Positions 2,481 to 58,676 of a stretch of 64,000 nt of DNA are shown in pieces. A program made the position numbers and the translations under genes. The stretch is taken from positions 124,001 through 188,000 of the IMG/VR virus record IMGVR_UViG_3300050120_000152. One strand, written 5' to 3'. Below the pieces are notes generated by a model. The model made no database searches. It saw only the letters and a list, made by a program, of their open reading frames with translations, and was not told where the DNA came from. Each line of letters begins with the position of its first letter. Position 1 is the stretch's first letter.

Positions 2481-2567
2481 GCGTCTTTGGGTGAGTGGCT
2501 GAAACCATCAGTTTTCCAAACTGAAACCTGCGAAAGTAGGTCAAGAGTTCGAATCTCTTAGGACGCT
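2481..2567 (+). tRNA. trnG: tRNA-Gly(TCC) with long variable arm
   Basis: GCGTCTT/AGGACGC, U73, TCAGT-TTTCCAA-ACTGA, variable hairpin CCTGC-GAAA-GTAGG. Confidence 0.85.
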
Positions 2568-2574
2568 CAAATAT

Positions 2575-7498: not shown

Positions 7499-7507
7499 AT
7501 GTTTTAT

Positions 7508-7624
7508 ACGTACATAGCTCAGTCTGGGAGAGCAGCCCCGTAGGAGGGGTAAGTTAAATCAATTTGACGTTTAGGCGTTGCAATGCGATACTGGTCGGTG
7601 GTTCGAATCCATCTGTGCGTACCA
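7508..7624 (+). ncRNA. expanded tRNA-like RNA (Pro-like D arm)
   Basis: ACGTACA/TGTGCGT-A-CCA; GCCCC-GTAGGA-GGGGT; 46-nt two-hairpin variable region; canonical T arm. Confidence 0.7.
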
Positions 7625-28450: not shown

Positions 28451-28540
28451 TGGCGGGAGTAGTGGGAGTCGAACCCACGACGTTTAACATTAAATGCATG
28501 GATTTAGAATCCACCGCTCTGACCACTGAGCTATACTCCC
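28451..28540 (-). tRNA. amber suppressor tRNA (anticodon CTA)
   Basis: GGGAGTA/TACTCCC-G-CCA; GTGGA-TTCTAAA-TCCAT; 19-nt variable region; canonical D and T arms. Confidence 0.88.
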
Positions 28541-38396: not shown

Positions 38397-38500
38397 TTTA
38401 TTATTCTCTTAGGTTATGTGTTTAGCTTACGCAAGCGTTAGGACTTAATTTCAATGATGTATTGTACACTATGGCGGTATACTTACGCAAGCGTTAGGAC

Positions 38501-41080: not shown

Positions 41081-41179
41081 AGTAACACTCTCTGTAATAT
41101 ACCTATTTATATGTATTACAAAGTTATGAATAAAAAGATTGACAAGTGATATAAATAACAAATATAATTACTACCTTGT

Positions 41180-41321
41180 GGGCGTATGGGGGAATTGGTA
41201 GACCCGGCAGACTCATTGAAGTCTTCTAGAAATAGAAGATTTTGTAAAATAAATTTAATAGTTTATTTTACAAAATCTGCTTCCGAAAGGAGTCCCGGTT
41301 CAAGTCCGGGTATGCCTACCA
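41180..41321 (+). tRNA. trnL: tRNA-Leu(CAA) split by a 57-nt insert (41215-41271)
   Basis: Removing the insert gives an 85-nt Leu cloverleaf with GCAGA-CTCAAAA-TCTGC. Confidence 0.85.
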
Positions 41322-41371
41322 AACAAATTCATGGTCTTCCCAAACCATGTCTTATGATGTAAGATATACAT

Positions 41372-41449
41372 CGGAGTGTAGCTCAGTCTGGCTAGAGCAT
41401 CGCGTTTGGGACGCGAGGGTCGCAGGTTCGAATCCTGTCTCTCCGACCA
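41372..41449 (+). tRNA. trnP: tRNA-Pro(TGG)
   Basis: TCGCG-TTTGGGA-CGCGA, CCA. Confidence 0.93.
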
Positions 41450-41788
41450 ATTCAAATTAAATGTTGACAATGACGTTTAATAATGTATAATTAGCTACAT
41501 GTAGTGGAACTCGTGACTCTGGTCACGTAAAGGATTGAAGCGAGAGCTTCTAAGGACTTGGAAATAGGGTATCGAATCCCTGCACCCCATGAGGGGGTGT
41601 TCGTCTAAGATAGGACACCAAGATTGCATTAGAAGGTAGCCATTCTGGATGAATGGAGAAAATAACACGAGGCGTCAACTGTACACGCCTACTCGCAAAG
41701 CTAGACATTAGTAAAAATGCACTCGCAAAGTTTTAAAAGTGTTGACAAAGAATAGAAACATGGTATTCTAGTTAACTCAGCAAGACAC

Positions 41789-41863
41789 GGGGAAGTACCT
41801 CAGAGACTAGAGGACTGGCATATGAGCCAGAAGTCGTAGGTTCAATCCCTACCTTCCCCACCA
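41789..41863 (+). ncRNA. tRNA with a 6-nt anticodon loop (AUAUGA)
   Basis: Perfect cloverleaf GGGGAAG/CTTCCCC-A-CCA, but CTGGC-ATATGA-GCCAG. Confidence 0.75.
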
Positions 41864-41866
41864 AAT

Positions 41867-43690
41867 TAAGATGGTGTAAAATCAGCGCAGAGTTGATCAC
41901 CTAGATGATAAGGGCTTACAGAACTGTTATAGGTTCTACACATATCATCCATCTTATAATAAAGCATGTGGATGAGTTTCCCGAAAGGGTTGTGAGTCGC
42001 CAGTCCAGAATTACGAATGGGCCGTTATACTAGACTAACGGAATTACCACTGACGATAATCGTTTGCTACGATTTGAAACATTCTTAGGAATGTATGGTA
42101 TAGCACCTTGAAGGCGAAAGTTTTCATGGTCAGGATAAGGTATCGCAAGATGCTAAAAGGGTTTGCGCCCACAAGCGCCCCACCATAGTAATATGGCCCA
42201 ACTATACAAGCTGGTAGGACACTAAGCGGAATGCTTAGGATTCATCATATGGTGGATATAGATCAGCACTCAATGGTAACGAAAACCACATTAGAGCCAA
42301 TCGGTGAAATGTGAGAGGTTTAGCAGCCTCTAGTTACATGCAACATTGGCCTGAAGTATGTTAAACCGGTAGTGGTTCCAGTATGAGGGTTTGCGCCTAA
42401 ATGCGAAGCTGCAATGTTAATGGGTGCGAACGCTCATGAAACATACTGTGAATGTATCCTTAGCGGGAGAAAAGCAGAGAAGGTCGGGTTTGAAGCTGTC
42501 GGGATGGAGAAAGTTTCATTAATAGCATTTCGCTACACATCCTTTTAGATAAATACATATATCTAGGAGATTGTGAATGAATTTTTGTCATTACGGTTGT
42601 GGAAAAGAAGGTCTGTTCTATTCTGAATCATCAAAGCGTTGGAGATGTTGCAAAAATCCAGCATTATGTGATGGTAGGAAACGTGAAGTCAGTACAATGA
42701 ATATAAATGGAGAGTCCCATAAAAGACTCAAAATGAAGTATAAAAATTGTCCTGAATGTGGGTTGAAGGTATCTGCACCAACATTAGCAGCACATGTACG
42801 TAAATGTACACGAAAACTTACTTGCATAGTATGTGGCAGTGAACATAAGCGTGATCAGGCAATAACATGTTCTGATAAATGTCGTAGTATATTAACTTCT
42901 GAAACAATAAGAGGACAATATGCTGATGGTAGTAGATCACCTAGAAAAGCCAAGAAAACGTCTGTAATATATGACGAACACGTTTTTGATAATGATGTAG
43001 AAGTTCTAGCATACAAATTGTTAGTTTCAATGAAAGTTGACAACTTGCAGCATGAAAGTGTTAGAATTCCATATGTCTATGAAGGATTAGACCATACATA
43101 TTTTCCTGATTTTACTTACGATGATGGTAACCAAAAATGTTTGGTTGAAATCAAAGCTGGTGGTAGAATGAACATGAGCAATTATGCTAAACTGCGCGCC
43201 GCTGAATCGTTAGGATATAAAATCATACTGTGGGATAGAAATGTTATTAAGAAGCTTTCTTCTAATAAAGACTGATGGACAAACGAACCTGCTCGACCTT
43301 AGTGGGTAAACTAGCCTTGATTGGCACTTTGAATATTATCAAAATAACGAAAAATGCAAAGTCAGGTTCGGTTACAGTTGAAAATAGCATAATGCTCCAC
43401 CGAAAGGAATGGAGTCATGCAAAAGCTCGCAAGGCTAATGTATGTTGGTAAAGAACTGCAAGTATGGGTGTAGCCACCCTTAGCTGCTCGCAAGGCAGGC
43501 TGAATGGGAAATGCCGAATAGACTGTAGCGACAATGGAAACGCCACCATTTAAAATAAGGCTGCTATGATGATGTACATATTTGTGGTCGAAAGACTAGA
43601 GTATGTGGACAAGTCGGGAAAAGGCTCGCAAAGCCCTATAATCCGCACGAAAGCATTATCACGAAGAGTGTAATCTCAACTCGACATATT
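41867..43690 (+). ncRNA. giant ornate ncRNA (GOLLD-like), about 1.1 kb, interrupted by an ORF
   Basis: About 680 nt + 410 nt ORF-free, more than 20 hairpins, many with GAAA/GCAA loops; starts directly after a tRNA; ends GAGT-GTAATCTCA-ACTC. Confidence 0.6.
42577..43275 (+). CDS. zinc-finger plus PD-(D/E)xK endonuclease (TnsA-N-like), putative homing endonuclease
   Basis: CxxC motifs; YFPDF..LVEIKAG; ATAAATA and AGGAG upstream. Confidence 0.75.
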   Translation: MNFCHYGCGKEGLFYSESSKRWRCCKNPALCDGRKREVSTMNINGESHKRLKMKYKNCPECGLKVSAPTLAAHVRKCTRKLTCIVCGSEHKRDQAITCSDKCRSILTSETIRGQYADGSRSPRKAKKTSVIYDEHVFDNDVEVLAYKLLVSMKVDNLQHESVRIPYVYEGLDHTYFPDFTYDDGNQKCLVEIKAGGRMNMSNYAKLRAAESLGYKIILWDRNVIKKLSSNKD

Positions 43691-44719
43691 TTTATAGACA
43701 AGTGCATCCAGAAAGGTTATAATTGATTACAAGATCACTTATAGCCTTTTTTCTTTACAAAATTCTTTAAGGAATACTCATGTCAAATGCTGATAATCAT
43801 TTTGCAGAACTGGTCAAGAATTTGAAATCGGATGGGGGTGTCCTCCATTTTAAATTTATTACTAAATGGTATAACAAGTATTATGTTACAGTGAATGCTG
43901 TTACGGTGCATAATTACATTTCTTCATTAGTTGAAGTTATTGGTATATATGTAGACGATAATAAATTCATGTCCATGGGTCAACTGATGAATGCATTATG
44001 CCTACATGGGTATCAAGAAGCCTATCGTCAAAAATTCAAAGATTTATCTGATGAAATGAACGATAGGATGCACTATCGTATTCTGGCTGAATTGTGTGGT
44101 AAACTAGTGTGGACTGAATGGGAGAAAATACCCGGCCATGATACAGTATAAGGAAAATCCTCCACGGTTGACAAAGGATAAAGAATTTGTCGATGAAATG
44201 ACTAACCTACTCACAGAAGCGATCTGTGAGCGGGAAAAGTTACTTGAAACTATCATCATGACAGAGTATCTTAATCCTACGACAGATACTAGGAATGTCA
44301 TGGAAGAGGCATATAGTCTCCTTGAAGAAACGGATATTAATCTGGGTCAACTTGCCGAAGCATTCAAAATCAAAATAATCTACTGAGAGAGTAAACATGT
44401 CGAACATCATAGATTTTACCGCTGTAGTGAAAGATCGTCAGAAATATAAAGATGATATGCTGAATGATATTGGTAACAAAGTTATTGAACTTTTTGGAAA
44501 ACTTCCCACTGTACCATCCACAGATGACGAAGTTATTGAACTTTTTGATACTATTGACACCATTCATGCCTATATCCGTAAACAAGGCTATGACTTTACA
44601 TCCGGTCAAGCATTGGTCGGCCAATTGCTGGAAGCTATGGAAAAGAAAGAACTGAGCTGTTGACAATTAGTTATATGTAATGTATTATATGTCTTTGCTA
44701 ATCACTAAGGCATATCTAC

Positions 44720-45346
44720 ATGAAGCGTTTATGTAATATTGCGGCAGTCCTAAGCCTACTCCTGTTTACATGGCTTGTTGGATCAGCTGTGTTCGATCTA
44801 TTCTTTGTGTTGCCGCGTGTGTCCATTCCATTGGCAATTCCTGCTGCTATTCCCATGGTGCATGAGGATGGTAAACAATTGGATTGCATGGCTCAAAATA
44901 TCTATTGGGAAGCTCAAGGTGAAAAAGCTTTGGGTAAAATCTTTGTAGGTATGGTGGTTATGGAACGGTTGCACTCGCCCCATTTCCCTAGTACAGTGTG
45001 TGGGGTAGTATTCCAAGGCAATCGTGATGCCCATGGCAAATCTATCCGTCATATGTGTTCATTTTCATGGACTTGTGATGGTGCAGATCATGATATAAAC
45101 TTTAACAATATCATTGATCGTCGTGAATGGTTGCTATCCTATTCAATTGCTAAACAGGTATTAGCTGGTAAGGCTCATGTTCCTATTGACATGGTTGGTG
45201 TGACTCACTACCATGCTGATTATGCAAAGCCATTCTGGTCTAAGGATCATAAAGATTATAAACTAGTGGCTACGATAGGTCACCATCTATTCTATCGTTG
45301 GAAAAAAGCCATGATTTCATCAAATGCTACAGTAGCGATGAGGTAA
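44720..45346 (+). CDS. SleB-like cell wall hydrolase
   Basis: CMAQNIYWEAQGE, CSFSWTCDG, THYHADY..P.W, IGHHLFY. Confidence 0.9.
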   Translation: MKRLCNIAAVLSLLLFTWLVGSAVFDLFFVLPRVSIPLAIPAAIPMVHEDGKQLDCMAQNIYWEAQGEKALGKIFVGMVVMERLHSPHFPSTVCGVVFQGNRDAHGKSIRHMCSFSWTCDGADHDINFNNIIDRREWLLSYSIAKQVLAGKAHVPIDMVGVTHYHADYAKPFWSKDHKDYKLVATIGHHLFYRWKKAMISSNATVAMR

Positions 45347-46044
45347 TATGATGACAAGCAAAATTCGCAGAAAATTTCTTTATATTCGGCGTAAGGCCAT
45401 TGCCGAGGGTTTGACTTCCGTGGAATGGTGCTGGCCGAAGGATCATCGTACATTCGTTGTTAGGCTTGGTAAGCAGCACATTGCAGTTTTCTATAATGAG
45501 GCAGAAAGTGAATCAGATGGTGATACCATAAGTGCCATGGATTATACGATGTCAATCATGGTCGAGGTATATTCTTTGAAAAATATCAAGAATTATAATG
45601 CTCTGGCTGCTGCTTATATAAAAGATCATAAAAAAGCTTGACATTCTCCTAATCTAAGATATAATGTATTACATATAGAGAATTACACAATGTCTAACAA
45701 ACTGATTAACACACTGTTTAACGTTCTGATTACTGGTATGATCGAACGATTCGATGATGTAAGTAATGATGCTTACAGTCTGAGTCGATTTGCTGCTGCT
45801 GGCCCCACCTATGATGATCTGTTGAAGTTGATGGAATCCATTGCCGAAAATGCAAATGGTGAAGTGTATGAAGGTTACAGTGGCCGTGGTATGTATGGCG
45901 ATAAATGCTGGGGTATTACTGGTGATGCTGCCAAGATCATTGAAATCGCTGGCGCGCATGGGGTGTTCGGCGCAAATATGGACAGCATGGGTCGTGACAG
46001 TATTGTTTATTGGCCTGCCCTGAAGTATACTGAACAAGATTAAA

Positions 46045-46328
46045 GAATGCGAAACCAAGTGGCTCGACGCCACGCGGATATCCGTCCTTGTGGGTAGGTT
46101 TCGAAGTCAATCGTTAAAAGATGCCTTGTGGTCGCTACATGAGGGATTACCGTTACACAATAGCGGTTGAAAGTCGATTAACGATTGGCGGTACTATAAG
46201 GTCAGATGATAGGTCATCTGACAACTATTGAAGTAGTTGCATGGTTCAGTGCCATGTAATGGGATTGCGGCAGAGAACGGTGAATCCCACATTTGTTGCA
46301 CTTGACCCTGCTTGCAGGGTCTTTTTTA
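46045..46328 (+). ncRNA. candidate multi-hairpin RNA ending in a terminator
   Basis: CGAAACC/GGTTTCG, GTCAATCGTTAA/TTAACGATTGGC, GTCAGATGA/TCATCTGAC, GACCCTGC/GCAGGGTC-T6. Confidence 0.5.
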
Positions 46329-47423
46329 TCCACTATTCAGCTAACTCTGATATAATAATCCCATGATTGTATATCGTGTAGAAAATAATAAAGGTTGTGG
46401 GCCATTCTTTGAAGTATGGAATATCGTGGACAAAAGCATCTATGATGAGCTTTATAAGTATTCAAGATATTTGACCACTCTCCCTTGCCCAACCAAAGCT
46501 ATGGCTCAAGGTAAACATTTTGCTTGTCGATCCTTGGAAGAATTAAGTAAATGGTTTATGTGTGATGAACATTGTGATCTGTTGACTTCTAATGGATTTC
46601 ATATTAGCATATACAATGTAAAAACTGTCCTACGTGGACAAATGCAAATCAGCTTTGTAAAAAAGAATGCAAAGCTGGTTGACACACTTCCCCTCACATC
46701 ACTCCAAGGATTATTACAATGAGCATTGTTTCTGATTTTGTTAAGTGTCTGAATGCTGCACAGAAAAAGAATTGGGTTACTCTGATTGCACATATTCGTA
46801 AGGGCGAATATATTTACAATCATGATAATTATGAAATTGACAAAGCTTATAATAGTAGCCGTTGTGCATTGTCTTTTGCCTATACCTATGACATTCTCCA
46901 TGGTGCCGATGATAGTTCGTTTAATCAGACCATTGAGGAAAGCAGCGAAGCTATTGATGAATTCTTTGGTGAGGATGCCGTGGCTATCGTATTCGAAGGT
47001 GGTAGCACTTTTGGTGAATATCTGAATGAACATACGAATGAAGGTGAAGGCGCTGACCTTGATGGTGAGCATGCTGCCAAATTGCTTTCCGATTTTCTTG
47101 GGTTTGGTGCTGAACACGGCGATGCCAAGTTCGTTACGATTCACTGGAAAAGCAACCAGACTGACAATTTCGAAAGTGTGGAAGCCTTGCAGTCTTTCCT
47201 TGATCTGAACCCCAAACGTGCACAGGGTTATCGTAAGATTACGGTGACGAAGCTTGTACCGCGAACCGTGTATGATGAAGTGGTGGAAACCATCACACTA
47301 TAAAATAAAATGGGGCTTCGGCCCCGTTTTCTATTGCATTATACATATTCTTTGGTATATACTCATTCCATGGTCATTCTTAAACCAGTCCTGCGTTCGC
47401 AGCAGATAACATCCATTCGCAAT

Positions 47424-47741
47424 ATGTCTTTTGAGGCATTGCTGAAGGCACAAGGTCATCTGTGCTTTTATTGCAATCATCATATGCCATTGGATGGTAT
47501 CACTAAAGATCATATGTTTCCTAAATGCCATGGTTTCCATTTGCGTGGTAACATGGTACTGGCACACAAGCGATGCAATGGTAAGAAAGGTAGCCGTTAT
47601 CCCACTACAGCAGAGTTGTTGAAGTGGGTGGCATTGTATACCAACAAGCCTAAGAAGCACTTGATAATCCGTACCAAAAATAATAAACCACGATTCAAGT
47701 TAAAAATTACCGCAGAACTGATCCATGATTTCCTATCGTAA
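47424..47741 (+). CDS. small HNH endonuclease
   Basis: CFYC..TKDHMFPK..GNMVLAHKRCNGKKG. Confidence 0.8.
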   Translation: MSFEALLKAQGHLCFYCNHHMPLDGITKDHMFPKCHGFHLRGNMVLAHKRCNGKKGSRYPTTAELLKWVALYTNKPKKHLIIRTKNNKPRFKLKITAELIHDFLS

Positions 47742-47790
47742 AACGATAGGAGCGAATGCTACCTGTCCTACCGCAAGCGTTAGGACTTAA

Positions 47791-48198
47791 TCAGGTAATG
47801 CGGAATCGTTTAAAAATGGTGGAATTTAGTCTCTCACCATACATTCTCTTATTCGGATAGACTTCACGAATAACTTGAGCTATGCACGATGCATAGCCTT
47901 TCTTTCTTTCAGACTTTTTAGTATAGAAATCGACAATGGTATCCCATTTGCCTTTCCATCCCTGATTTTTATAGACCATAGCCCATGATGCCACTCTACC
48001 ATCGGGTGAACATGCATAAAATACTATGGCATCTTTGAGATAGCAATCTTCAGGGTCTGCATAGTTTAGCAGATTCTCTAACATACGACCATTCCACCGA
48101 TTGTTAAGTTTCAGTAACTGATTGCGAATTACTGAACTAATATCGTTCAACGGTGTATAAAACACATTAACAATTTCTTTACTCATGGATACTTTCAC
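47791..48198 (-). CDS. GNAT-like acetyltransferase
   Basis: FYTKKSERKKGYASCI motif A; paralog of 38501-38905. Confidence 0.6.
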   Translation of the reverse strand: MKVSMSKEIVNVFYTPLNDISSVIRNQLLKLNNRWNGRMLENLLNYADPEDCYLKDAIVFYACSPDGRVASWAMVYKNQGWKGKWDTIVDFYTKKSERKKGYASCIAQVIREVYPNKRMYGERLNSTIFKRFRIT

Positions 48199-48345
48199 AT
48201 TACCTTATCATGATGACAGCCCATCCATTATTTGTCAAGCATCATTTAATTATGAATCAATCCCTAATATGTTACATGTAATGCTTGACATTCTAGTTCC
48301 ATATTCTATAATTCATCTATCGAATCACACAAGGCAACGCCTACT

Positions 48346-49098
48346 ATGTTTTCACCTGTCCAAAACATTCTCTCTGTCGGCAAGGACGCAAAAACCATCA
48401 AAGGAACTAAAAAGGGTGTTATGACAGGCATTCTGTATCTTGCGCCACACCTTTTGTCTGGTTATCAAGTATGCCCGAAAGCTAGTGAAGGTTGCAAGCT
48501 GGCCTGTCTGTATACGGCTGGGCGTGGCGTATATAGCCGTACTCAAAACGGTCGGATCAATAAGACCAAATGGTTTTTTGAGGATCGTGAATCATTCATG
48601 GAAACGTTGGTCAATAACATGGAAGCCTTGATCCGCAAGGCTAACCGCGAAAATATGATCCCTGCTGCGCGATTGAATGGCACCAGTGATATTGCATGGG
48701 AAAAGATTGCTTGTGTGAAGAATGGCATCAAATATGCATCTATCATGGAGGCATATCCCGAAGTCCGCTTTTATGATTATTCTAAAGTGCTTGGTCGTTC
48801 TAAGGCTTTGAAACTCAAGAATTATCATTTGACGTTTTCGTTGTCTGAATCGAATGACAATGATGCTCAAAAAGCTCTTGCACAAGGCTATAACCTTGCA
48901 GTAGTATTACGTCTTGGCAGAACTGAAAAGAAACCTAAAAGGTGGTCAGGTTATCCTGTCGTGAATGGGGATGAAACTGATGTACGGTTCCTTGATCCAA
49001 AACATGGTCATATCATTGCACTGTTTCCGAAAGGTCGTGGTCGAAAGGATACCAGTGGTTTTGTCCGTGAAGTTAACTCAACCCTAAAGGCAGCATAA
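48346..49098 (+). CDS. Gp88-family protein
   Basis: CPKASEGCKLACLYTAGRG, RLNGTSDI.WE, FYDYSK, NYHLTFS. Confidence 0.8.
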   Translation: MFSPVQNILSVGKDAKTIKGTKKGVMTGILYLAPHLLSGYQVCPKASEGCKLACLYTAGRGVYSRTQNGRINKTKWFFEDRESFMETLVNNMEALIRKANRENMIPAARLNGTSDIAWEKIACVKNGIKYASIMEAYPEVRFYDYSKVLGRSKALKLKNYHLTFSLSESNDNDAQKALAQGYNLAVVLRLGRTEKKPKRWSGYPVVNGDETDVRFLDPKHGHIIALFPKGRGRKDTSGFVREVNSTLKAA

Positions 49099-51488
49099 TC
49101 ATGGCTCATAATTTTCGTTATACAGTGCGGCATGAATTTAGCTATGGAGAGGAACAGTATATCTTCGATTCCCCCATTTTGTTGTTAAGGTATTATGATG
49201 ACTTGGAACAGCAATTGGCACTGGCGAAAGTTCTAGGCATCAATTATGAACCAAATCGCGGGGAATACTTGATTATCGAACTGCAACCTAACATTGTGGA
49301 AAAAGTATTGACATTGGATGAAGTCAATACTATTCTTGATGCTGGTCAATAATTTTAACAATCACTAAAACTAAGGAAAAACTATATCATGGCAATCAAA
49401 GCAGTTACTCGTTACCAATCCGAAGATGGAAAGCTTCATGATGATATTGTGGAAGCTCGCTCGTATGATTCCGTTCAACGCGCTTTGACAGGCGTAAAAG
49501 CAGCCATTCTGACCGCATCACCGAATCATATGCTGGGCAATCTCCCGCTTGATCTGGTGAACAATCCGAAGCATGCTGAACTGCTGCGTGATGCTCTGAA
49601 TGCTGTACTGAATAGTCACCGCCACTATGGCAAACTGCGTAAGAATAAGCCTGCGCAGACTGCTACAAAAGTCTGAAATACTGCTTGACAAGCATTAATT
49701 GTTGGAATAAACTTTAAATATCATCATAAAGGCAATCAAATGCACGATTCCACAAATTCTGATTCTATCACCGACTATGCTTCCAATTCGGTAGCAGCTA
49801 CACTTATTTCATCCAAAAATCAAATCCGTCGAATGTATCCCACGGTTTTGCTGGATGAGCATCCTGATGCTATTCTGCCGATCATTTTGGATCGCACCGT
49901 ACATAGCATGATTCATCTGGATCAGAAATTTGATATGAATTCGATTTTCGATCAAGATCATTTCAACAAGATGAAAGCTGAAGCATTTATCCATCTGGCA
50001 TGGCTTAATACGCCGGATAATACGCCATATCCAGAATCATTGAAATACTCCTCCACCAGTGTTTCATCTGATGAAGATGATGAAACCGTTGTAGTAGTTC
50101 CCAAGGTGGCTCCAGCAGCAAAAGTCACAACCGTTGCCGATGTTGCCAAAAATCGCATAATCAGCAAAAATTCAAAGTTCCAAAAAGCATTGCTTATCTA
50201 TACAGAAGATCAGGCCAGCCATGCCAATCGTGCAGCAACATTGCGCCGCATGATTACAGAACTGGAGATGAATCCAAGTACAGCAAATGTGTACTATAGT
50301 AAGTTCAAGAATCCAGTATCACTCCAGAAGTAAAGCTGAAGATAGGCTGAATCAAGTTAAGATTAACTGCACCATCCGAAAATAAGTCTTGCAATTCGTA
50401 ACAAAGCGTGTAGAATGTAAAACACTGGAACGATCCAGTATCACCTAACCCAACACCAACTCACAACAAAGGAAATACGATCATGGCAAAGCGCGAACCT
50501 GCGGTAACTTTCAAGGGCACGATGGCCGAACTGACCAGCAAGCTCACCCTCAACGGCAAGAAGCTCTCCCAGCCGTTTCTCTCCCAGCTTGTCACCTACG
50601 GCTTGTCGGCGTCTGTCGTTGCCAAGCAGCCCAACTCGGTTGGCAAGGGCAAGCCGACCAATATCGTGGAAGTCACCAGCGGCAAGGGTCACATCTTCGC
50701 TGAAATCGTGGCGGATGCGGCGGCTGAGCATGTCGATGCTTCTGCTTCGACCGAAGTGACCGCGTAATACATCTGCTGCAAGAATATCAGAAAGCCCTAG
50801 CCATAGTCTAGGGCTTTCTTTTTGATAAATATATTTCAACGGAGATAGTCTATGTGCCTTGTACGCCTTGATAACCATGTTGAAAGTGTGAACCAGATTA
50901 TTGCAGGGTTGGAAGCGGGAACCCGAACTCTAACCAGTCTGCAAGTCGCTATGCTGCTGCGTGAGCTTGACGAAGCGTTACAGGCATGTCAGGGTAGCCC
51001 TATCCTTACGCATGCGTTAGGACTTAATCCAAGCATGGTAAGCTAACCATAAAGAATATGCATCATTCTGTTACTTTGCTTATTGCAAAGATTTCCTAAA
51101 AGGAATATAATGATTGCACTAGAGGATTCACCATGATTAACCTACTTGTCAAACATGATACTGCCCACAAAGTATGGCACAAGCTCAGTGTAGGCTTTCC
51201 TGACCGTGCTGCATTACCTGATAACATGGAAGGTCTAGCAGGATCATGCTGGCAGTTTGCCATGCAATACGCTATTGACCATCAAATGAACCGTGACCTC
51301 ATTGCATTCCGTATCGTTGACAAGAATGATTCTGTCATCTATGAATACGTTTCAAATGCAACCATGAATGCCGACACTACTGGCATCAAAACCTATCAGC
51401 GTTTCTTAACATCTGTTTAACCTTCCCTTAACAATTCGTAAGGTCACCAGTCCCAACACCATACCATGAAAATCTTTGTTGTCAACAC

Positions 51489-51537
51489 TTGACAATCCAT
51501 TATATATAATGTAAAATAGGGTTGTGGATGGGAAGCA
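51489..51537 (+). promoter_or_regulatory. repeated promoter plus GGA-rich leader (8 copies on both strands)
   Basis: TTGACA-17-TAAAAT-AGGGTTGTGGATGGGAAGCA; copies + 39144, 52510, 61181 (no clear -35); - 54909, 59796, 61970, 63788. Confidence 0.8.
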
Positions 51538-51633
51538 ATCCACTCCATGATGAAAAAGAAATTTGAAAATAATGCTTGACGCTATCCCTGTAATCGCTTA
51601 TAATACTTCCACACCAACCAACGGAGCAAAACA

Positions 51634-52362
51634 ATGCTTGTCAAGATCACAAACAATGGCGAATCCTTCCTTTGCAGCCCGCGTCAGGCTGGCGTGCTGG
51701 AATTGCTGCTTGATAGTAATGCAGGTGGGTTTGCATCGGTCAAGGGCTATGTATCCAGTGAAACGGGCGAAGTGGCAGATTATACCTTCATCAGCCGTTT
51801 CAGCGTAGGCAACATGTATGAGCGTGCTATGGCAGCTCTGGAAACCTTCACAGTGGCTGATATTATCGACAGCATTCGTGACAATCTGAAAGTCAAGGCT
51901 CTGACCACGGATGAACTTTACGAAGCGTTCGATGCTCGCCGTGCGGCTGAAATTGCCAGCAAGGTGCAAACCCTTGAAGGTGACCGCAGTGATGCACGTC
52001 GCCAGTCGCATGATCGTAATTATCATGTGTTGGATCATGGCGTGAAGGTTCATTACGTCACGGAAAAGGTTGACAAGCTGACTTATCCAGTGCTGGAATC
52101 CTATGGCAATGAACGTCTGCCAGTGGTCAAAAGCATCATGTTGAACATTTTGGAAGTGAAAAAGACCGTGACCACGGCAGGCACGTACAAAACCGTGAAC
52201 AGTGGTGTTCCTGTCATCATCGGCAATGCTTTGAACAAGCTGCTGCCGAAAACGGCCAAAATGAAAGTGTTGTCGTTCAAGGATGACAATTTCGATTCTC
52301 TGGCTCTGGCTGGCGTCCAGTACATCCCCGAAGATTTCAAGGGCTTGTATAGCGCAAGCTGA
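51634..52362 (+). CDS. hypothetical protein
   Basis: 242 aa; own promoter and GGAG RBS. Confidence 0.75.
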   Translation: MLVKITNNGESFLCSPRQAGVLELLLDSNAGGFASVKGYVSSETGEVADYTFISRFSVGNMYERAMAALETFTVADIIDSIRDNLKVKALTTDELYEAFDARRAAEIASKVQTLEGDRSDARRQSHDRNYHVLDHGVKVHYVTEKVDKLTYPVLESYGNERLPVVKSIMLNILEVKKTVTTAGTYKTVNSGVPVIIGNALNKLLPKTAKMKVLSFKDDNFDSLALAGVQYIPEDFKGLYSAS

Positions 52363-53361
52363 ACCTGAAAAATAATCCCCATAGGCTAACACTTATGGGG
52401 ATTTTTCTGCTATTGGGAACATGTACCTGCGATGAAATTCCGTTCAAGCCTTATCTAATCAATGGGCAGGGAAACCTGCCCATTCAGCTTACGTTCATAA
52501 TGCATATGGTAAAATAGGGTCGTGGATGGGAAGCATTGCCACGATAAAGTATGTCATGAGATACCTTAAAATGATGCTTGACAATGATTCTAATAATGAT
52601 ACTTTTCTTTATAAGAAAAGACTTGTAATGGATAATTCATTACAGTATGATACTGGCATATCCTACTGGAATATCACGATGAACAGTTCGCATGCTACCA
52701 TCAAGATTCGCATTGGCAACAATGTAATGTTGGATTATAATCCTACCTTCTGCCGTTGGTATCATAGCGACGATGGCTTGACATGGTGGGCATTGCCGAT
52801 CAAGATCAAGCGTGTTGAAACGGCTATTGCATACGTAGCGAATCATTATTATATACTGGCCGAAAACCTGTACAAGTAATGCTTGACAGCCTGCCATAGT
52901 TCTATTAGAATACTTGCATCAACCAAGGGAACGTCAGCATGAACATCAACCATCGCGACAATACCATCATCATCATTTTCGCCCTGCTGGTGCTGGCTGG
53001 CATCTATTTTGAAACCTATCGCTGGTTCAATTGATACTGCTTGACTTTCATGCGAGCTATGTTACAATACTCCCATCATGAAACCCAACGTCGAGATTGA
53101 CTGAATATGTTAATATCAATCGAATCATTTGATATGGTTTCCGCGTTGTATACCGTGAACATTTTCGGTAATCTTTATTATCTTGGGTTTGCCAAGTATG
53201 ACGAGAATGATGTAGAGATTTATGATTATGCCGCTATAAAGTATCAGCCTGATATTAGCAGGGCTATTAGTAGTCAAGCTGAAAACCTTCATGAACAATT
53301 GGATCAAAACAAAAAAGAAATATTGCTTGACTGTTGAACCGATCATCGTTATAATACTCCC

Positions 53362-53484
53362 ATGAAAACGAAAATCAACAATCCGGTAGCGAAGCATTCT
53401 GGCAAATTCAACAAGCCTGCGGTTCATCGTGATCGCAAGAATGATTATCGTCGCCGCGAAAAACATTCAAATAGGGTTGCATAA
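53362..53484 (+). CDS. small basic protein NPVAKH..FNK..VH.DRK..Y.R..KH (40 aa)
   Basis: Not in the ORF track; own promoter; stop overlaps next start. Confidence 0.65.
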   Translation: MKTKINNPVAKHSGKFNKPAVHRDRKNDYRRREKHSNRVA

Positions 53485-56400
53485 TGATTCATAATTCCCG
53501 CAAGTTGCTCAAGAATGAATTACTGAAAAACTATATCAGCATGGTTTCCTATGATCGCGGCCATAGTGCTGGTGAACAGGAAGTAGAAAGTATTGCTAAT
53601 GAAATGGCATATGATCTGCAAAAGGTCGATGATTATATCACAGGTCTGGAACAGCAGTGCTTTCGGTTTCATTGTGCTGGCTGATAATACGGTGAAGAAA
53701 GCTCGAATTTAGCCTTGACAGCTATGGTTTCAAAGAGTAATCTGTAATCTGTTTCGTGAAGTATGATTGTTAAGGATTGGATTAAAAGAGCTACAGAACA
53801 GCCTGCGGGTGTAGCCAACCAATTATGGGCATGAATAGGAATACGGCTATGTAACACTGTCACCCTTGCTATGGGAAGCATTTACTTATAGACTGATAAA
53901 ATTAGAATGCGGTACGTCTGGGCTGTAATCAGACGAAAATCCTCCCGCCAGCTAGGATAAGCCCTTAGCTGGCTCAATTTCAGGAACGCCATCATGATCA
54001 ATCGTCACGAGCAGCAAGGTTATACCATTCTGGAACTGGGCTGGCTGCTTTATGCGGCTTGCTGGATCGTCGGCATCATCGGATGGATTGCCAACATCGT
54101 GGCTTTGTGCCATATGACAATGCCTGTTGACCTCGGTCATGCCAGCATTCTGTTCATTTTGCGCATCATCGGCATTCCAGTCGCACCATTGGGTGCAGTG
54201 TTGGGATTGTTTTTCTAAAAATCCCTTGCAATATGATGCCATTCTGATATAATACCCTTATCAACCACGATAGGGGATTATCATGCGCTACACTCTTCAC
54301 GATGCAAACGGTAACAAGCTGGGTGAATCTGAGACTGCGCAAGGCATCGGCAATATTGCCACACATGGCACGTTTTCATTTGATTCAAATCCGAACCGTT
54401 TTTATCCGTTCACAGTCTATGAACAGGAAAATGGTCATATTGTTGGTCACAATTATGAGTGTGAAACTCATATGACAGAAGCATTGCGTAAGCTAAAATA
54501 AAGCTTGCACTACCAGACAATTCTGTTATAATACTCTCACACCAAATGAAACGGAGTAAAATCATGGCAACTGCAACTCCCACTCCCACCACTGTCCGTC
54601 CACTGTTCACCATCGCTGCGGAGATTCGCAAGGATTGGGGCGCAAAGGTCAGTCCACATGCAAAGCCTTATTTGGATGCTATGGATTCTCTGAACAGAAT
54701 CGGAGACAACTATTATTGTGATACTGGTGTAAGTGTTGTCCTATATTTTCTCGGCAATGCGCAAGGTTGGAGGGGAGAATCTGCCAAGCGTATCAAGGCC
54801 GAACTCAGGGCAATGGCTGACATCAAGTAACAATTTCAGAAAGGTTGTCTCTTGGAACAGGCGTAAAAGCCAGCCGACAAGGTGGCTTTTCCTTTTTGGA
54901 TATTACTGTGCTTCCCATCCACAACCCTATTTTACATTACATATAATGGATTGTCAATAGATATTTTATAAAATAATTGGTGTAATTTACTAAAATATGG
55001 TACTTTGCTATTGCAAAGATGGGCTAAAGCTATTATAATACTTTCATCCCATCGGAGATAGTCATGGCTAAGCGTGTCGATTCCGTTACGATCAATGGCA
55101 AGGTTCATACCAAGGCCAGCATTCGTGCCATGCTTGAGTGCAACGATCAGTGGCTATATCGTGCCATTGTGGCTATCAATGCTTCACAGACTGCCAATGA
55201 GCTTGCTCATGGTGGAACCATCGAAGATAATGGTATTGGCTTCAATGGGGCAGACGGATACATTCTTATGAGCTTTGCGGCACAGTTGAATCGTTGCGGC
55301 CATCTTTCACCAAAGCAGACTATCATTGCTAGAAAAAAGATGGTAAAGTATGCATCACAGTTACTTACCATTGCCCGCGAAAAGGAATCGAAAATCCAAT
55401 GAAACAGCTAGTACTAAATACAGATCAAGGTGTTTTTACTTTTCATACGCATAATAGTGGTGCTTGCACGTTGCATGTCTATCCTGCACTTCAAGCAGAT
55501 GGCGATGATAATGGATTCAGGGCAGCTATGGATGGCGTTGAAAGTTTGTTACTTGCCATGTATTCCGCTGGCATCAATCTGAATACGCCTGAAATAGCTG
55601 AAGCAATCGACACGGCAATTTCCGCCATCGAAAATAATTACTGAAATGGTTGACAGCGCAATTCTATTGCATTAGAATAATCATACAGCAATCAAACAGG
55701 ATTCATTGTGAATACTCTCCCGTCTCTGAAAGCTTTTCAACTTGCCATGATATTCAACCGTTTTGTTATTGACGGTGACACTTATCCGACTGATGCCGAG
55801 TATATCAATGACGAGGATGGTGAACGCATCGTGGTCAGCAATGATTCCGATGAACTGACCTTTATCAAGATCGTTTCCAAGGATGACAGCAATGTATTTG
55901 TGGTCAGCAATGGTTCCGATGACTATACCGTTCAGTTTTTGAGTAGTCAGGCAATCAATCCATTTTCGGAGTAAGTTATGCCATCGTCCAATGTTGCTAT
56001 TTTCATTCTGCTTTCCACCATCCTTTTCGGCGGTTTGTTCCTTGTATGGCAAAAAAGTGATTGGCTGAATTTCGTCATCAAGGCTGGACTTTTCGGCATG
56101 ATGGTGTATGGTATCGTCATTTTGATTACCAAGTAATATGAAACTGTTATTTTGTAATGTCTGTCACGATGTTGTCAAATTGACTTTTGATGGCAGATAT
56201 TGTGCATGTAAAAAATCATGGGGGAAATATCTCCCTGATGGATTATACGCTCAAATCAGTGGAGAAGCTATTCCCATAGGGTTTGCCAATAATACGTTAC
56301 TGGAAGCCTTGTGCAAGCGTCCACAAGCTGGTGATGGATCACGGTTCACGGCCTTTGTCATTCCTCATGTTTGCCCTACTATCGAAACGGTTGAACATAA

Positions 56401-56772
56401 AAACTAAAATAATAGTTGACACCCTGAAACATTCTGTTATAATTACCTCACACCAACCAACAAGGGCAACATCATGAGCAAGTTCGCAGCTTCCATCGTC
56501 AAGGGTACTGGTTTCGTGCTGAATCGTGATGAAGGTCAGCCGTTCTATACGATTTCCAAGACTGGCGCACTGGAAGGAAAGCAGTCGCCGAACATGGGTT
56601 TCGTGTACAAGAATGCCGAGACTGGCGAGTATTCCGTTCATCTGGGTCTGAAGCGTACCGTGGTCGCGGATTTCAACGCTGTCAAAGGTTTCGTCAAGGA
56701 ATCGCTGGCCGCGTAACGCTTGACAGCGTTGCGAGCATTGTATTAGAATGCTCGCAACAAAGAGTTTTGATT

Positions 56773-56890
56773 GGGTTTGTACGCAGATGGCATAGCGGCT
56801 GTACAGTAAGGCCAGTGTGGCAACATTGTTGCCGATTATTATCGAGTTGATCGGTTCTAATCTTCGTGGGTTCGAATCCCTCCCTGCCCA
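56773..56890 (+). ncRNA. expanded tRNA-like RNA (Tyr-like, loop CAGUAAG)
   Basis: D arm CGC/GCG, 50-nt variable region with hairpins, T arm GTGGG-TTCGAAT-CCCTC; weak acceptor stem. Confidence 0.55.
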
Positions 56891-57147
56891 TTCAAAATGC
56901 TTGACATGCACCATTCAAGTTGTATAATAATCACATGGAAAACGAAACCAAACTTGTGATGTGCGATGTGGGCAGCTGCCGTAATGAGTTGCCAATCGAA
57001 CAGATGAACAGTGAATCCAGCAATGGTGAAACATGGTATGCTTGCCCTGATTGTGTGGACAAGGTTCAGAACAGGTCTGGTTATTGTTCGCTCCAATGTC
57101 AATACACGGGATTCTGTGACGATAGTTGCTGAAGTAATGAGTTAATA

Positions 57148-57345
57148 ATGGCGAGTTCTCTGGTGCGAAACCTGTACCAACTAGCCTAGCTGTAGGGCCA
57201 TGCAGGGAATGACTGATCGGGTATGGTAACCCGAACATAGGATAAATGTTAAATAGAAACGGCAGAGTCTTGGGGATTCTGATACGCCTATTGAAGCATC
57301 CTTTAAAAGCATTGATCCCAACATACAGTCAGAGAATTCGACCAT
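57148..57345 (+). ncRNA. candidate structured RNA
   Basis: 11-bp closing stem CGAGTTCTCTG/CAGAGAATTCG; GACTG/CAGTC; TCGGGT/ACCCGA. Confidence 0.5.
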
Positions 57346-57510
57346 TATTAACTTGACAATACTGTTTCATGTTGTATAATGTATTACAACCCCAGAAACT
57401 TTCGGTGGATAATGGGGCAATAAACCGGGCTACTAAGCTGAGTGGTAATTGATAGATCAGGATAAACCTTGCCCTTTGGGCCTGACCGTTGGTTACGAAA
57501 CCGAATATTC

Positions 57511-57657
57511 ACATAGTGAAGCATTCTTAAACGATACTTACACCTATACAAAACAGAACTGTAGGCGACAAGGATAAGCGTTTCCTATCACACGTATGGG
57601 ATTAGAATGTTAGGATAGCGCCTAGCACGTTTGGTAAGCTAGAATGCTTCACTATGT
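57511..57657 (+). ncRNA. candidate RNA closed by a perfect 17-bp inverted repeat
   Basis: ACATAGTGAAGCATTCT / AGAATGCTTCACTATGT. Confidence 0.55.
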
Positions 57658-57703
57658 AAATAATGATTGACAGTACCGTTCCAAGCTGTATAATGTAATT
57701 CAT

Positions 57704-57809
57704 GGGTCGGTAGCTCAGTTGGTAGAGCAGGAGACTTATTCAAGTATCTTCAATGAGGATACTTCTATTAATCTCTTGGTCGCGGGTTCGAACCCCGCCC
57801 GACCCACCA
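57704..57809 (+). tRNA. trnK: tRNA-Lys(TTT) split by a 30-nt insert (57738-57767)
   Basis: Body resembles enterobacterial tRNA-Lys; removing the insert gives 76 nt with loop CTTTTAA. Confidence 0.88.
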
Positions 57810-58183: not shown

Positions 58184-58676
58184 CAAGGTTTCATCCCTGA
58201 TACAACAACCGGGAATGTAAGGATACTATAATTTTCGGAATATGTCAAGATGCTCATACCATCCGCTGACGTAAGTTATCAGGACTTTTTGTGATATACC
58301 CTTGTGAAGCCGTGGTGTACTGGTTTAGGGTATATTGCAAAAAGGTGTTGACAAGCTGCAATGGTGTTGTATAATACAATTACACAATCGAGAGCTTTAG
58401 CGGTAACAGAATCGACTGTGGGGATGTGCACGGAGCGGCAACGTGTTCACGTTGTGATGTGATAAGGATATAGGACAGTAGGATAACAGAATAAACCCTG
58501 ATTGATTCGCGAGTCAACATGAATAAACCTGTTAGAGTATTGTTACAATCTGAATCATATTGTGGGTTCGAATCCCACCATCCTCCTCGCTAAAGGTAGC
58601 CATTCTGATGAATGGAGAAAATAACACGAGGCACATATGCGCGCCTACTCGATTAACCATCATTTGGCAAAAAGAG

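Follow-up and report, generated by a model that had tools for sequence, protein, structure and literature searches.

A bacteriophage of 340 kb carries three otherwise perfect tRNA genes, for Leu, Lys and a third with the anticodon CAU, which are split in the anticodon by short hairpin inserts. Similar inserts exist in unrelated phages, and on the evidence of sequence alone they are tentatively read as protein-spliced mini-introns. The Leu and Lys genes lie in a window of 64,000 nucleotides (positions 124,001 to 188,000 of IMGVR_UViG_3300050120_000152), to which all coordinates refer unless stated otherwise, whereas the CAU gene is located just outside of it on the same contig. An earlier note had described tRNA-Leu(CAA) and tRNA-Lys(UUU) as interrupted right after the wobble base by related inserts, and this observation is confirmed. 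Its interpretation, that an unknown endonuclease and the T4-type RNA ligase 1 (Rnl1) of the phage excise the inserts and rejoin the exons, or that the unspliced forms act as nuclease-resistant precursors or decoys, is only partly supported. The features concerned are the following.

41139–41168 (+), sigma-70-type promoter of the interrupted tRNA-Leu(CAA) gene: TTGACA, an 18-nt spacer and TATAAT, with 12 of 12 consensus matches, ending 11 nt before the tRNA 5' end.
41180–41214 (+), 5' exon of tRNA-Leu(CAA): acceptor arm, D arm, 5' strand of the anticodon stem and loop positions 32–34 (C32 T33 C34).
41215–41271 (+), 57-nt insert in tRNA-Leu(CAA): a 4–6 nt linker (ATTGAA), hairpin 1 (8–10 bp, GAAA loop) and an AT-rich hairpin 2 (11–15 bp); the boundary may be shifted by one base either way, the 35/36 option being 41216–41272.
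41272–41321 (+), 3' exon of tRNA-Leu(CAA): loop positions 35–38 (AAAA), 3' strand of the anticodon stem, long variable arm, T arm, acceptor 3' strand and encoded CCA.
57667–57694 (+), sigma-70-type promoter of the interrupted tRNA-Lys(UUU) gene: TTGACA, a 16-nt spacer and TATAAT, read directly from the sequence.
57704–57737 (+), 5' exon of tRNA-Lys(UUU), ending at the wobble base T34.
57738–57767 (+), 30-nt insert in tRNA-Lys(UUU): the linker ATTC, a 9–10 bp hairpin closed by AAGT...ACTT and the 3' linker CTA; its first two bases can pair with its last base and with T35.
57768–57809 (+), 3' exon of tRNA-Lys(UUU): loop positions 35–38 (TTAA), 3' strand of the anticodon stem, variable loop, T arm, acceptor 3' strand and encoded CCA.
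24958–26109 (−), Rnl1, a candidate exon-sealing enzyme with no specific link to the inserts shown.
26081–26650 (−), DUF488 protein (Pfam DUF488, 2e-27), overlapping the start of the Rnl1 gene by 29 nt, so that the two are probably co-expressed; RAS14 has no such gene next to its Rnl1, and a full-text literature search turned up no paper about its function.

Both tRNAs were called by ARAGORN in intron mode, tRNA-Leu(CAA) at 41180–41321 with 85-nt exons and tRNA-Lys(UUU) at 57704–57809 with 76-nt exons, both ending in CCA. In default mode Leu is missed and Lys is miscalled as Ile(aat), but the Rfam tRNA model matches Lys across the insert at 62.2 bits. For Lys only the boundary 34/35 restores the mature loop CTTTTAA, and precise excision would join GGAGACTT to TTAATCTC. 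The Leu boundary, however, is ambiguous, since the same mature loop CTCAAAA results from 33/34, 34/35 or 35/36. Both inserts start with ATT(G/C)AAGT, of which the AAGT opens an 8–10 bp hairpin, and the inserts alone fold with z = −5.1 (Lys) and −6.6 (Leu) against shuffles. This 8-mer occurs 15 times in the window against 8.9 expected, but only these two copies follow a wobble base of a tRNA. The chance of an agreement in 7 of 8 bases at the exact insert start is estimated at roughly 4e-4. No other copy of the Leu insert exists in the window.

The phenomenon is limited neither to two genes nor to the ATT.AAGT motif, in which point the earlier note has to be corrected. The third interrupted gene, tRNA(CAU), is found about 4.2 kb upstream of the window (positions 4761–4910 of L099, the flanking stretch) and has an unrelated 73-nt insert at 34/35. 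All three genes are interrupted at or next to 34/35 and have canonical exons and encoded CCA; Leu and Lys have their own consensus promoters, while the CAU gene follows another tRNA gene by 14 nt. Furthermore, the Lys and Leu(CAA) genes are the only genes for those anticodons in the 92 kb that holds the tRNA region.

Whether related phages share the inserts had been proposed beforehand as a test, and the result is mixed. Alignment with uninterrupted homologues shows a clean 30-nt gap for Lys (four homologues) and a clean 57-nt gap for Leu (the Leu(CAA) genes of the related contig L110 and of RAS14). The Lys exons are 88–91% identical to the tRNA-Lys of RAS14, CM1 and Xoo-sp13. In the closest relative, L109, the orthologous Lys locus shares the −10 region and leader but lacks the insert, and stem differences between the two are compensatory. 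The inserts are therefore discrete gains which are not conserved within the lineage, and they could be recent and neutral or harmful. In contrast, related inserts at the same position do occur in other phages, which speaks for function.

A scan of 241 M metagenome records for 15–45 nt inserted at 34/35 of Lys-type tRNAs gave three good tRNAs plus one dubious hit. A scan of IMG/VR with no constraint on position within the loop gave two phage-like cases, L229 and L241, both at 34/35. In total, the pattern scans found the same kind of insert at 34/35 of tRNA-Lys in four other phage-like contigs. The ATT.AAGT motif is absent from three of these four metagenomic Lys inserts as well as from the CAU insert. 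The five interrupted Lys genes keep all 7 acceptor pairs, and 13 of 21 cloverleaf pairs show compensatory changes; however, the scans required intact D-arm, loop and T-arm motifs, which biases the sample toward intact exons. The L229-type phage is T4-like and abundant. Its interrupted Lys gene is the only Lys among the 17 tRNAs in the 20 kb read, it is identical in four samples, and the neighbouring gene is indexed in 59 blocks of the collection.

All eight inserts fold as hairpins (z = −2.8 to −6.6), but no sequence motif is common to all of them. Six of the eight can form a 2-bp helix bridging the two junctions, with covariation (A-U/U-A, A-U/C-G, U-A/C-G, U-A/U-G). The helix is missing in two of eight, and allowing for the choice of boundary its significance is modest, with an estimated p of about 0.005–0.02.

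An alternative, considered less likely, is that the inserts are accidents at the DNA level which inactivate dispensable phage tRNA genes, so that nothing is spliced. They might originate from template switching or hairpin-associated duplication at the apex of the anticodon-arm inverted repeat, or be leftover sequence of lost mobile introns. Besides the absence from the nearest relatives, it is in favour of this view that the 3' arm of the Lys hairpin (AGGATACTT) is an 8-of-9 copy of the adjacent exon (AGGAGACTT) and the 5' arm its complement, as local templated duplication would give. A similar resemblance exists in the CAU insert, but it is weak for Leu and was noticed after the fact. In addition, 34/35 lies almost at the centre of the 17-nt anticodon-arm palindrome, and the bacterial-genome hits to the same pattern were plain tandem duplications. 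The region also holds several aberrant tRNA-like genes with 6-nt anticodon loops or extra arms, so defective or non-decoding tRNA genes are evidently tolerated here. On the other hand, exons and CCA are flawless in all three genes, as are the promoters, the same kind of insert recurs at the same junction in unrelated phages with fully paired acceptor stems, and the insert is stably carried across samples in the only Lys tRNA found in the 20 kb read of the L229 array.

It is also possible, though rather doubtful, that the interrupted transcripts are functional without splicing. They would keep the tRNA body but present a blocked anticodon loop, acting as decoys, sponges or resistant reserves against host anticodon nucleases or tRNA-modifying enzymes, or as carriers that release small hairpin RNAs. 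The wobble bases of the three tRNAs (Lys UUU, Leu CAA, CAU) are normally hypermodified, and Lys(UUU) is the classical target of PrrC. The phage carries other non-decoding tRNA look-alikes with their own promoters, for example at 41789–41863 and 7508–7624 with 6-nt loops, and phage tRNAs are shaped by tRNA-targeting defences (eLife 2023;12:e85183). However, a decoy needs neither exons that would regenerate a perfect anticodon loop nor a helix juxtaposing the two junctions, and the interrupted gene is the only Lys tRNA in the L229 array read. Nuclease binding or resistance, including any role of PrrC, is conjecture.

The ORF at 24958–26109 is an Rnl1, matching Pfam RNA_lig_T4_1 (9.9e-19) and T4_Rnl1_C (1.4e-13), the latter being the tRNA-specific C-terminal domain. 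It matches T4 Rnl1 structures (9do4, 9e-54; 2c5u, 3.2e-53; 5tt6, 6e-53) with the KxDG lysine aligned, shows 39% identity to the ligases of Xoo-sp13 and RAS14, and is encoded 15 kb away. Its link to the inserts is circumstantial, since Rnl1 is common in jumbo and T4-like phages with uninterrupted tRNAs such as RAS14 and Xoo-sp13. Moreover, the same contig has an Rnl2-type ligase 2 kb from the third interrupted tRNA, and an HD phosphohydrolase and a small P-loop protein are encoded in the same tRNA region. In L229 a polynucleotide-kinase-like ATPase and a phosphoesterase directly follow the interrupted gene. Pfam screens of 125 window ORFs, together with precomputed Pfam hits for flanking genes, gave no EndA/Sen, RtcB or Pnkp and no endonuclease candidate in the 92 kb examined, which leaves out about 250 kb of the contig. 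No endonuclease for such introns is known in bacteria or phages.

Protection of the gene at the DNA level appears improbable. In this case the insert would interrupt the recognition site of an endonuclease targeting tRNA genes, either a free-standing homing endonuclease of a competing phage or of this phage, as with T4 SegB, or a host nuclease, and RNA splicing would be secondary or absent. Homing-endonuclease genes do sit among the tRNAs, namely a GIY-YIG SegE-like gene with NUMOD3 at 2681–3325, T5orf172 at 22266–23435 and an HNH, and RAS14 has an HNH between its tRNA genes. Collaborative homing, in which an intron is paired with a free-standing endonuclease, is established for cyanophage psbA. 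However, no endonuclease gene lies next to either interrupted gene in the window, the three inserts differ in sequence and are thus not copies of one mobile element, and it is not explained in this way how tRNA function would be kept.

Self-splicing of the inserts as minimal ribozymes, or removal assisted by a trans-acting RNA such as GOLLD, is very unlikely. Certainly 34/35 is the classical site of group I introns, for example in cyanobacterial tRNA-Leu(UAA) (CUU/intron/AAAA), the intron segment AAGT can pair with exon bases 31–34 (ACTT) as in a P1 helix, and a GOLLD RNA lies 2 kb downstream of the Leu gene. But at 21–73 nt, against about 200 nt or more, the inserts are far below any group I or II core, and Rfam at E ≤ 1 finds no intron (including Intron_gpI) or ribozyme family in or near them. 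No sequence is conserved among the inserts, the base before the 5' junction pairs with A instead of forming the usual G-U wobble, and the last intron base is A, C or G, so there is no consistent terminal G. GOLLD has no known catalytic activity.

Archaeal and eukaryal protein-spliced tRNA introns, which depend on a bulge-helix-bulge motif, the EndA/Sen endonuclease and RtcB or Trl1 ligase, are likewise short, non-catalytic, located in the anticodon loop and compatible with a folded mature domain, and a helix brings their two junctions together. A healing-and-sealing route through an Rnl1-family ligase is plausible, because the ligase domain of fungal Trl1 is Rnl1-like. However, the inserts are positioned at 34/35 (or 35/36, 36/37) and not at 37/38, no bulge-helix-bulge is formed, and the two sites flank a 2-bp helix instead of lying in 3-nt bulges separated by 4 bp. 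The host is bacterial, since the promoters are of sigma-70 type and the relatives are phages of Xanthomonadales. T4 tRNA repair by Pnkp plus Rnl1 involves the same ligase family with its C-terminal tRNA-specificity domain, the same tRNA-Lys(UUU) and a site next to the wobble base, but it rejoins a single PrrC break 5' of the wobble base in an uninterrupted tRNA, whereas here two cuts would be needed and a segment removed. Intervening sequences of bacterial rRNA removed by RNase III are also hairpin inserts in a structural RNA gene, present in some strains and absent in close relatives. But rRNA fragments function without religation, while a tRNA cut in its anticodon must be religated, and the junction geometry here would leave a 1-nt 5' overhang in place of the 2-nt 3' overhang of RNase III.

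Precedent comes from the 'enigmatic' conserved tRNA introns of Lak megaphages and other huge phages (Devoto et al.; bioRxiv 10.1101/356790). There, too, oversized tRNA genes in very large genomes become canonical once an internal segment is removed, alleles with and without the insert exist, and no mechanism is known; the authors suggest that such introns may be common in large phages. Lak phages infect Prevotella, and the phage described here is a relative of Xanthomonas and Stenotrophomonas jumbo phages. Added here are the mapping of the junction to 34/35 by comparison with empty alleles, a shared fold (linker, hairpin, 2-bp bridging helix) and the occurrence of the same type in T4-like phages.

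In the preferred, still tentative model, the gene is transcribed from its own strong promoter as a pre-tRNA whose cloverleaf, including the 5-bp anticodon stem, forms normally, and the intron, consisting of one to three hairpins after a roughly 4-nt linker, sits on top of the anticodon loop. In most cases a 2-bp helix would hold the splice junctions opposite each other, the first intron base pairing with the first base of the 3' exon and the second with the last intron base. An unidentified endonuclease, presumably reading the tRNA body and anticodon stem rather than a sequence motif, would cut both junctions. The exon ends would then be sealed by the phage Rnl1, the phage Rnl2-type ligase or the host RtcB, after end-healing if the cuts leave a cyclic phosphate and a 5'-OH. 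What the analysis demonstrates is the anatomy, the clean insert-versus-empty alleles, the recurrence in unrelated phages, the intact exons and promoters and the presence of ligases; that excision and ligation, as well as aminoacylation, happen at all, by which enzymes and why, is inferred. On this reading, the inserts would be short, protein-dependent tRNA introns of a kind peculiar to large bacteriophages, and their recurrence in unrelated phages suggests an undescribed way of splicing tRNAs in bacterial viruses.

With default settings tRNA finding gives 14 genes in the window, but it misses one of the two interrupted genes and misnames the other, since Lys is called Ile(aat) at 57716-57809. 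If introns are allowed, ARAGORN finds two interrupted genes, both with 7-bp acceptor stems, normal D and T arms and an encoded CCA:
41139-41168, sigma-70 consensus promoter of the Leu gene, 12 of 12 matches
41180-41321, tRNA-Leu(CAA), 85 nt of exons and a 57-nt insert at 41215-41271
57667-57694, sigma-70 consensus promoter of the Lys gene, TTGACA, 16-nt spacer, TATAAT
57704-57809, tRNA-Lys(UUU), 76 nt of exons and a 30-nt insert at 57738-57767
The tRNA model of Rfam spans the Lys gene, insert included, at 62 bits. A boundary test shows that only a 34/35 split regenerates the Lys loop CTTTTAA, so that removal of the insert would join the 5′ exon end GGAGACTT directly to TTAATCTC, whereas for Leu the splits 33/34, 34/35 and 35/36 all regenerate CTCAAAA. 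Both inserts begin with ATT(G/C)AAGT, the AAGT opens an 8-10 bp hairpin, and the Leu insert has a second, AT-rich hairpin. The observation of the earlier note, that both genes are interrupted in the anticodon by inserts with this common start, is therefore correct in every particular, although for Leu a break right after the wobble base is one of three options. Two further ARAGORN intron calls, at 7508-7624 and 58420-58586, were judged unreliable as intron calls because their anticodon stems are mismatched, and the ‘intron’ in the Ile(TAT) of the contigs L143 and L148 is a long variable arm.

The window is positions 124001-188000 of a 340,344-bp metagenomic phage contig, IMGVR_UViG_3300050120_000152 (also recorded as JGI Ga0500009_000050). 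No isolate genome is close, and a megablast of the whole region against 50,697 phage records found nothing. The Rnl1, a 250-aa conserved protein and the tRNA-Lys point to relatives among the Xanthomonas and Stenotrophomonas jumbo phages Xoo-sp13, CM1 and RAS14. A closer uncultured relative is L109, a 350-kb contig whose marker protein is 74% identical. Together with the promoters these relatives show that the host is a bacterium. Single-protein scans for relatives found only the source contig, and contigs from two other samples are 100% identical to the window and give no variation. The contig from sample 3300050121 (L105) is identical to the window except for a gap of about 30 bp at 38452-38481, next to a 26-nt overlap in the BLAST pieces, which suggests a repeat-mediated deletion variant in the population.

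The inserts are discrete gains. The tRNA-Lys genes of RAS14, CM1 and Xoo-sp13 match both exons at 88-91% identity and are 76 nt long, and the alignment shows one clean 30-nt gap between T34 and T35. In L109 the Lys gene sits at the same locus with the same −10 region and leader, again without the insert, and its stem differences from the window gene are compensatory. The Leu(CAA) genes of the contig L110 and of RAS14 likewise lack the 57 nt. A BLAST of the inserts against the window showed no other copies of either, so they are not a dispersed repeat or a repeated mobile element. In IMG/VR, an exact junction 15-mer and a pattern combining the D arm with ATTSAAGT retrieved only the source contig; the other 72 and 17 hits were chance matches in coding DNA, and one was a truncated tRNA followed by an HNH gene.

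Exact-protein look-ups along the contig extended the region covered to positions 105.6-197.1 kb, in which the tRNA genes lie between about 111.6 and 181.8 kb. A third interrupted gene, a tRNA(CAU), is located about 4.2 kb upstream of the window start on the flanking stretch L099 of the same contig (L099:4761-4910), where it follows, after 14 nt, an 87-nt tRNA-Met(CAU) that has an extra arm. It carries a 73-nt insert of three hairpins whose boundary is again uniquely 34/35, but whose sequence is unrelated and lacks ATT.AAGT. BLAST of this tRNA against the phage records found nothing. Within these 92 kb the interrupted Lys and Leu(CAA) genes are the only genes for those anticodons. The same region contains further unusual tRNA or tRNA-like genes:
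2481-2568 (+), tRNA with anticodon TCC (Gly) and a class II-type long extra arm, 88 nt, no encoded CCA, directly upstream of a normal 72-nt tRNA-Gly(TCC)
7356-7500 (+), tRNA-like gene of 145 nt with perfect acceptor and T arms and no recognisable anticodon arm
7508-7624 (+), real tRNA-like gene of 117 nt with perfect acceptor and T arms, CCA, a 6-nt loop (GTAGGA) on a GCCCC/GGGGT stem and two extra hairpins in the variable region
28451-28540 (−), amber-suppressor-type tRNA (anticodon CTA) with a long variable arm, 66 bits against Rfam tRNA
41789-41863 (+), tRNA with a perfect cloverleaf, CCA and its own promoter but a 6-nt anticodon loop (ATATGA), as if the wobble base were missing
For the last of these ARAGORN reports a two-base anticodon, and BLAST found no homologue in the phage records. 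Long-armed Arg(TCT) (97 nt) and Met(CAT) (87 nt) genes lie upstream of the window. Suppressor tRNAs also occur in RAS14 (CTA and TTA) and in the T4-like phage represented by the contig L229 (CTA). In RAS14 (L095:26019-26152 (−), record 296018-296151) a 134-nt gene annotated ‘tRNA-OTHER’ has good acceptor, D and T arms and about 60 extra nt in the middle, but its fold is no better than shuffles (z = 0.56). Furthermore, a hairpin of the form CCCC, 5-6 nt loop, GGGG recurs at about 2390-2460, 7535-7552 and 41580-41600 in tRNA-like or promoter-led non-coding stretches, followed by TAAG at two of the three sites. One of these stretches is the RNA-like region 41498-41700 behind a perfect promoter at 41464-41491, and a similar hairpin sits in a 127-nt tRNA-like gene of the related contig L190.

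The region also encodes several RNA-related proteins. Besides the Rnl1 at 24958-26109, which has the nucleotidyl-transferase lysine (KxDG) and the C-terminal tRNA-specificity domain (Pfam RNA_lig_T4_1 and T4_Rnl1_C; alignment to T4 Rnl1 structures at about 1e-53 with the lysine aligned), a deaminase-like protein, a TilS-like PP-loop ATPase, YqeY, an HD phosphohydrolase and an Rnl2-type RNA ligase are encoded, as genes for tRNA modification and RNA repair, downstream of rIIA/rIIB, at and inside the upstream part of the tRNA region (L106:2214-4231, L106:8519-9139 and L099:7020-8006, flanking stretches of the same contig; 107.8-123.1 kb). The Rnl2-type ligase is the gene at L099:7020-8006. As to a polynucleotide kinase-phosphatase for end healing, the 92 kb examined hold only a 135-aa P-loop protein that matches kinase families through its P-loop alone, plus the HD phosphohydrolase. 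The small P-loop proteins of this phage and of L229 share only the P-loop. For DUF488, encoded next to Rnl1, a full-text search listed no study of its function. Pfam screens of 125 window ORFs found no EndA/Sen, RtcB or Pnkp. Precomputed Pfam hits of the flanking 28 kb likewise contained no EndA/Sen, a search that leaves out about 250 kb of the contig and the host genome; Bacteria are not known to have EndA. Other elements among the tRNA genes are:
2681-3325 (+), GIY-YIG SegE-like homing-endonuclease-type gene with NUMOD3
22266-23435 (−), T5orf172/zinc-ribbon homing-endonuclease-type gene
24.3-49.1 kb, an HNH gene somewhere within this interval
43267-43682 (+), full-length match to GOLLD RNA (RF02032), 149.7 bits against a gathering score of 150, E = 6.8e-40
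The GOLLD match, to an RNA of unknown function that sits near tRNAs in phages, lies 1.4 kb downstream of the Leu/Leu/Pro/odd-tRNA cluster and overlaps the end of ORF 42577-43275.

Removal by a group I or II ribozyme is poorly compatible with these data. A group I catalytic core (P3-P9) normally takes about 200 nt or more, but the inserts are 30, 57 and 73 nt here and 21-35 nt in the other contigs, that is 5-10 times too short, and the Rfam search at E <= 1 over the whole window gives no intron or ribozyme family. The junction bases do not follow the group I rule of a U at −1 forming a U-G wobble in P1 and a terminal G: the −1 base is U (Lys) or C (Leu, CAU), in the possible P1-like pairing U34 faces A, and the last intron base is A (Lys), C or A (Leu) and G (CAU). 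However, the position is shared, since 34/35 is the classical group I site in tRNA-Leu(UAA) (CUU/.../AAAA). Hammerhead-like motifs were looked for by eye and not found. The bulge-helix-bulge motif of archaeal and eukaryal introns, in which two 3-nt bulges on opposite strands, each containing a splice site, are separated by a 4-bp helix, was not found either. The minimum-energy folds show a 3x3 internal loop, a 2-bp helix, a small internal loop and a hairpin for Lys, whereas Leu and CAU form multiloops, and no 4-bp central helix fits the mapped junctions. The junctions are at 34/35, or at 35/36 or 36/37 in some metagenomic cases, and not at the canonical 37/38. RNase III was rejected because the mapped junctions would leave a 1-nt 5′ overhang and not a 2-nt 3′ overhang. 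The RNase E consensus (U at +2) fits only 4 of 6 junctions, and that enzyme is unlikely to be precise enough.

Inserts of the same type were found elsewhere. A scan of 241 M metagenome records for a Lys-type tRNA (D arm, GACTT, TTAATC, variable loop) with 15-45 nt inserted at 34/35 gave four hits, of which three are good tRNAs with inserts of 21, 22 and 30 nt, each forming a hairpin. The fourth (L193) is dubious, because nothing resembling a tRNA D arm precedes the match. The gene next to one of the three good hits has a 35-nt insert at 36/37. A scan of IMG/VR with the insert allowed anywhere in the loop gave 52 hits, mostly giant-virus tRNA-Tyr genes with ordinary eukaryote-type 37/38 introns, but in two phage-like Lys genes, L229 and L241, the insert is at 34/35. 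In a partial scan of bacterial and archaeal genomes, the same pattern returned only archaeal canonical 37/38 introns and a few bacterial tandem duplications without hairpin inserts. Other large viral contigs (120-147 kb; L224:270-799, also L199:7319-8258 and L225:3121-8654) have runs of tRNA genes with 19-69 nt inserts; in L224 four consecutive tRNAs carry 37-49 nt inserts that share a hairpin (loop CTGWYAAG) followed by TTCAGC, possibly at 37/38. The five interrupted Lys genes are divergent, yet all keep seven acceptor pairs, and 13 of 21 cloverleaf pairs show compensatory changes. L229 belongs to a T4-like phage, as shown by clamp loader, RegA and gp46/47 homologues. Its interrupted gene is the only Lys tRNA among the 17 tRNAs in the 20 kb read, it is identical in four samples, and the neighbouring gene is indexed in 59 blocks of the collection. 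A convincing polynucleotide-kinase-like ATPase and a phosphoesterase follow it directly.

The window Lys and the L229 Lys have the same predicted architecture. The anticodon stem is followed by a 3x3 internal loop made of positions 32-34 and 36-38, a 2-bp helix in which intron base 1 pairs with U35 and intron base 2 with the last intron base (A-U and U-A in the window, A-U and C-G in L229), a small internal loop and a hairpin closed by AAGU...ACUU. The same 2-bp bridge is possible in the CAU insert (U-A, C-G) and in the 36/37 insert (U-A, U-G), as well as in Leu and in one metagenomic Lys if their ambiguous boundary is read as 35/36, but it is absent in two metagenomic Lys inserts. The chance of four or more hits among the six unambiguous cases is estimated at 0.005-0.02, which is suggestive but not proven. 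All eight inserts fold better than shuffles, with z from −2.8 to −6.6.

The weight of evidence favours real introns removed by proteins, although in the absence of RNA data this remains a tentative reading. In its favour are the recurrence at one junction in three genes of one phage and in unrelated phages, the flawless exons and promoters, the stable carriage as the only Lys tRNA found in the tRNA array of an abundant phage, the junction-bridging helix, and the ligases and end-healing enzymes nearby. The inserts, their recurrence, the intact exons and the ligase genes are established from sequence, while excision, ligation and the enzymes responsible are inferred, and no endonuclease for such introns is known or was found in the 92 kb examined. 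However, the inserts are missing from the nearest relatives, the same region tolerates several abnormal tRNA-like genes, and parts of the Lys and CAU hairpins resemble the adjacent exon, which would fit an origin by local templated duplication and keeps alive the explanation that the genes are inactivated, considered unlikely but second in rank. Unspliced decoys or other non-decoding roles appear less likely still, and DNA-level protection or ribozyme-based removal least of these. The interpretation offered in the earlier note, including religation by the Rnl1, is only partly supported: the Rnl1 is a reasonable sealing enzyme but is not specifically implicated; relatives with uninterrupted tRNAs have the same ligase, and an Rnl2-type ligase and the host RtcB are equally possible.

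A more speculative and very improbable possibility, which the data nevertheless leave standing, is that the interrupted tRNAs are defence-triggered spares. In this view the host's own anticodon nuclease, a wobble-position enzyme of the PrrC or RloC type, would make the two cuts at the intron junctions and the phage Rnl1 would seal the exons; RloC cuts on both sides of base 34. A functional Lys, Leu or Ile/Met tRNA would then be produced exactly when the host starts destroying its own, and the two neighbouring tRNA-like genes whose 6-nt loops appear to lack base 34 would belong to the same conflict.

Introns in phage tRNAs were already reported as ‘enigmatic’ in Lak megaphages, with the remark that they may be common in huge phages (bioRxiv 10.1101/356790), so that the category is known but unexplained. 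The Leu and Lys genes described here likewise are oversized tRNA genes of a huge phage that become canonical on removal of an internal segment and have insert-free alleles in related genomes. New are the different phage lineage, the exact junction mapping against empty alleles, the preference for 34/35, the shared predicted fold with covariation between unrelated phages, the occurrence in T4-like phages and the neighbourhood of RNA ligation and healing genes. With precisely mapped junctions, alleles with and without the insert, a candidate structural rule and an abundant T4-like phage that carries the feature, the question becomes testable.

According to textbook knowledge bacterial tRNA introns are self-splicing ribozymes, and protein-spliced tRNA introns belong to Archaea and eukaryotes. 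If these 21-73 nt inserts are removed, bacterial viruses or their hosts have a protein-based tRNA splicing route with an unknown endonuclease. This would give phage RNA ligases and end-healing enzymes a constitutive substrate in addition to damage repair, and it would explain the ‘enigmatic’ introns of the Lak megaphages. Furthermore, it would show that phage tRNA sets are undercounted, because standard tRNA finders miss or misname such genes, as default ARAGORN did here with Leu and Lys.
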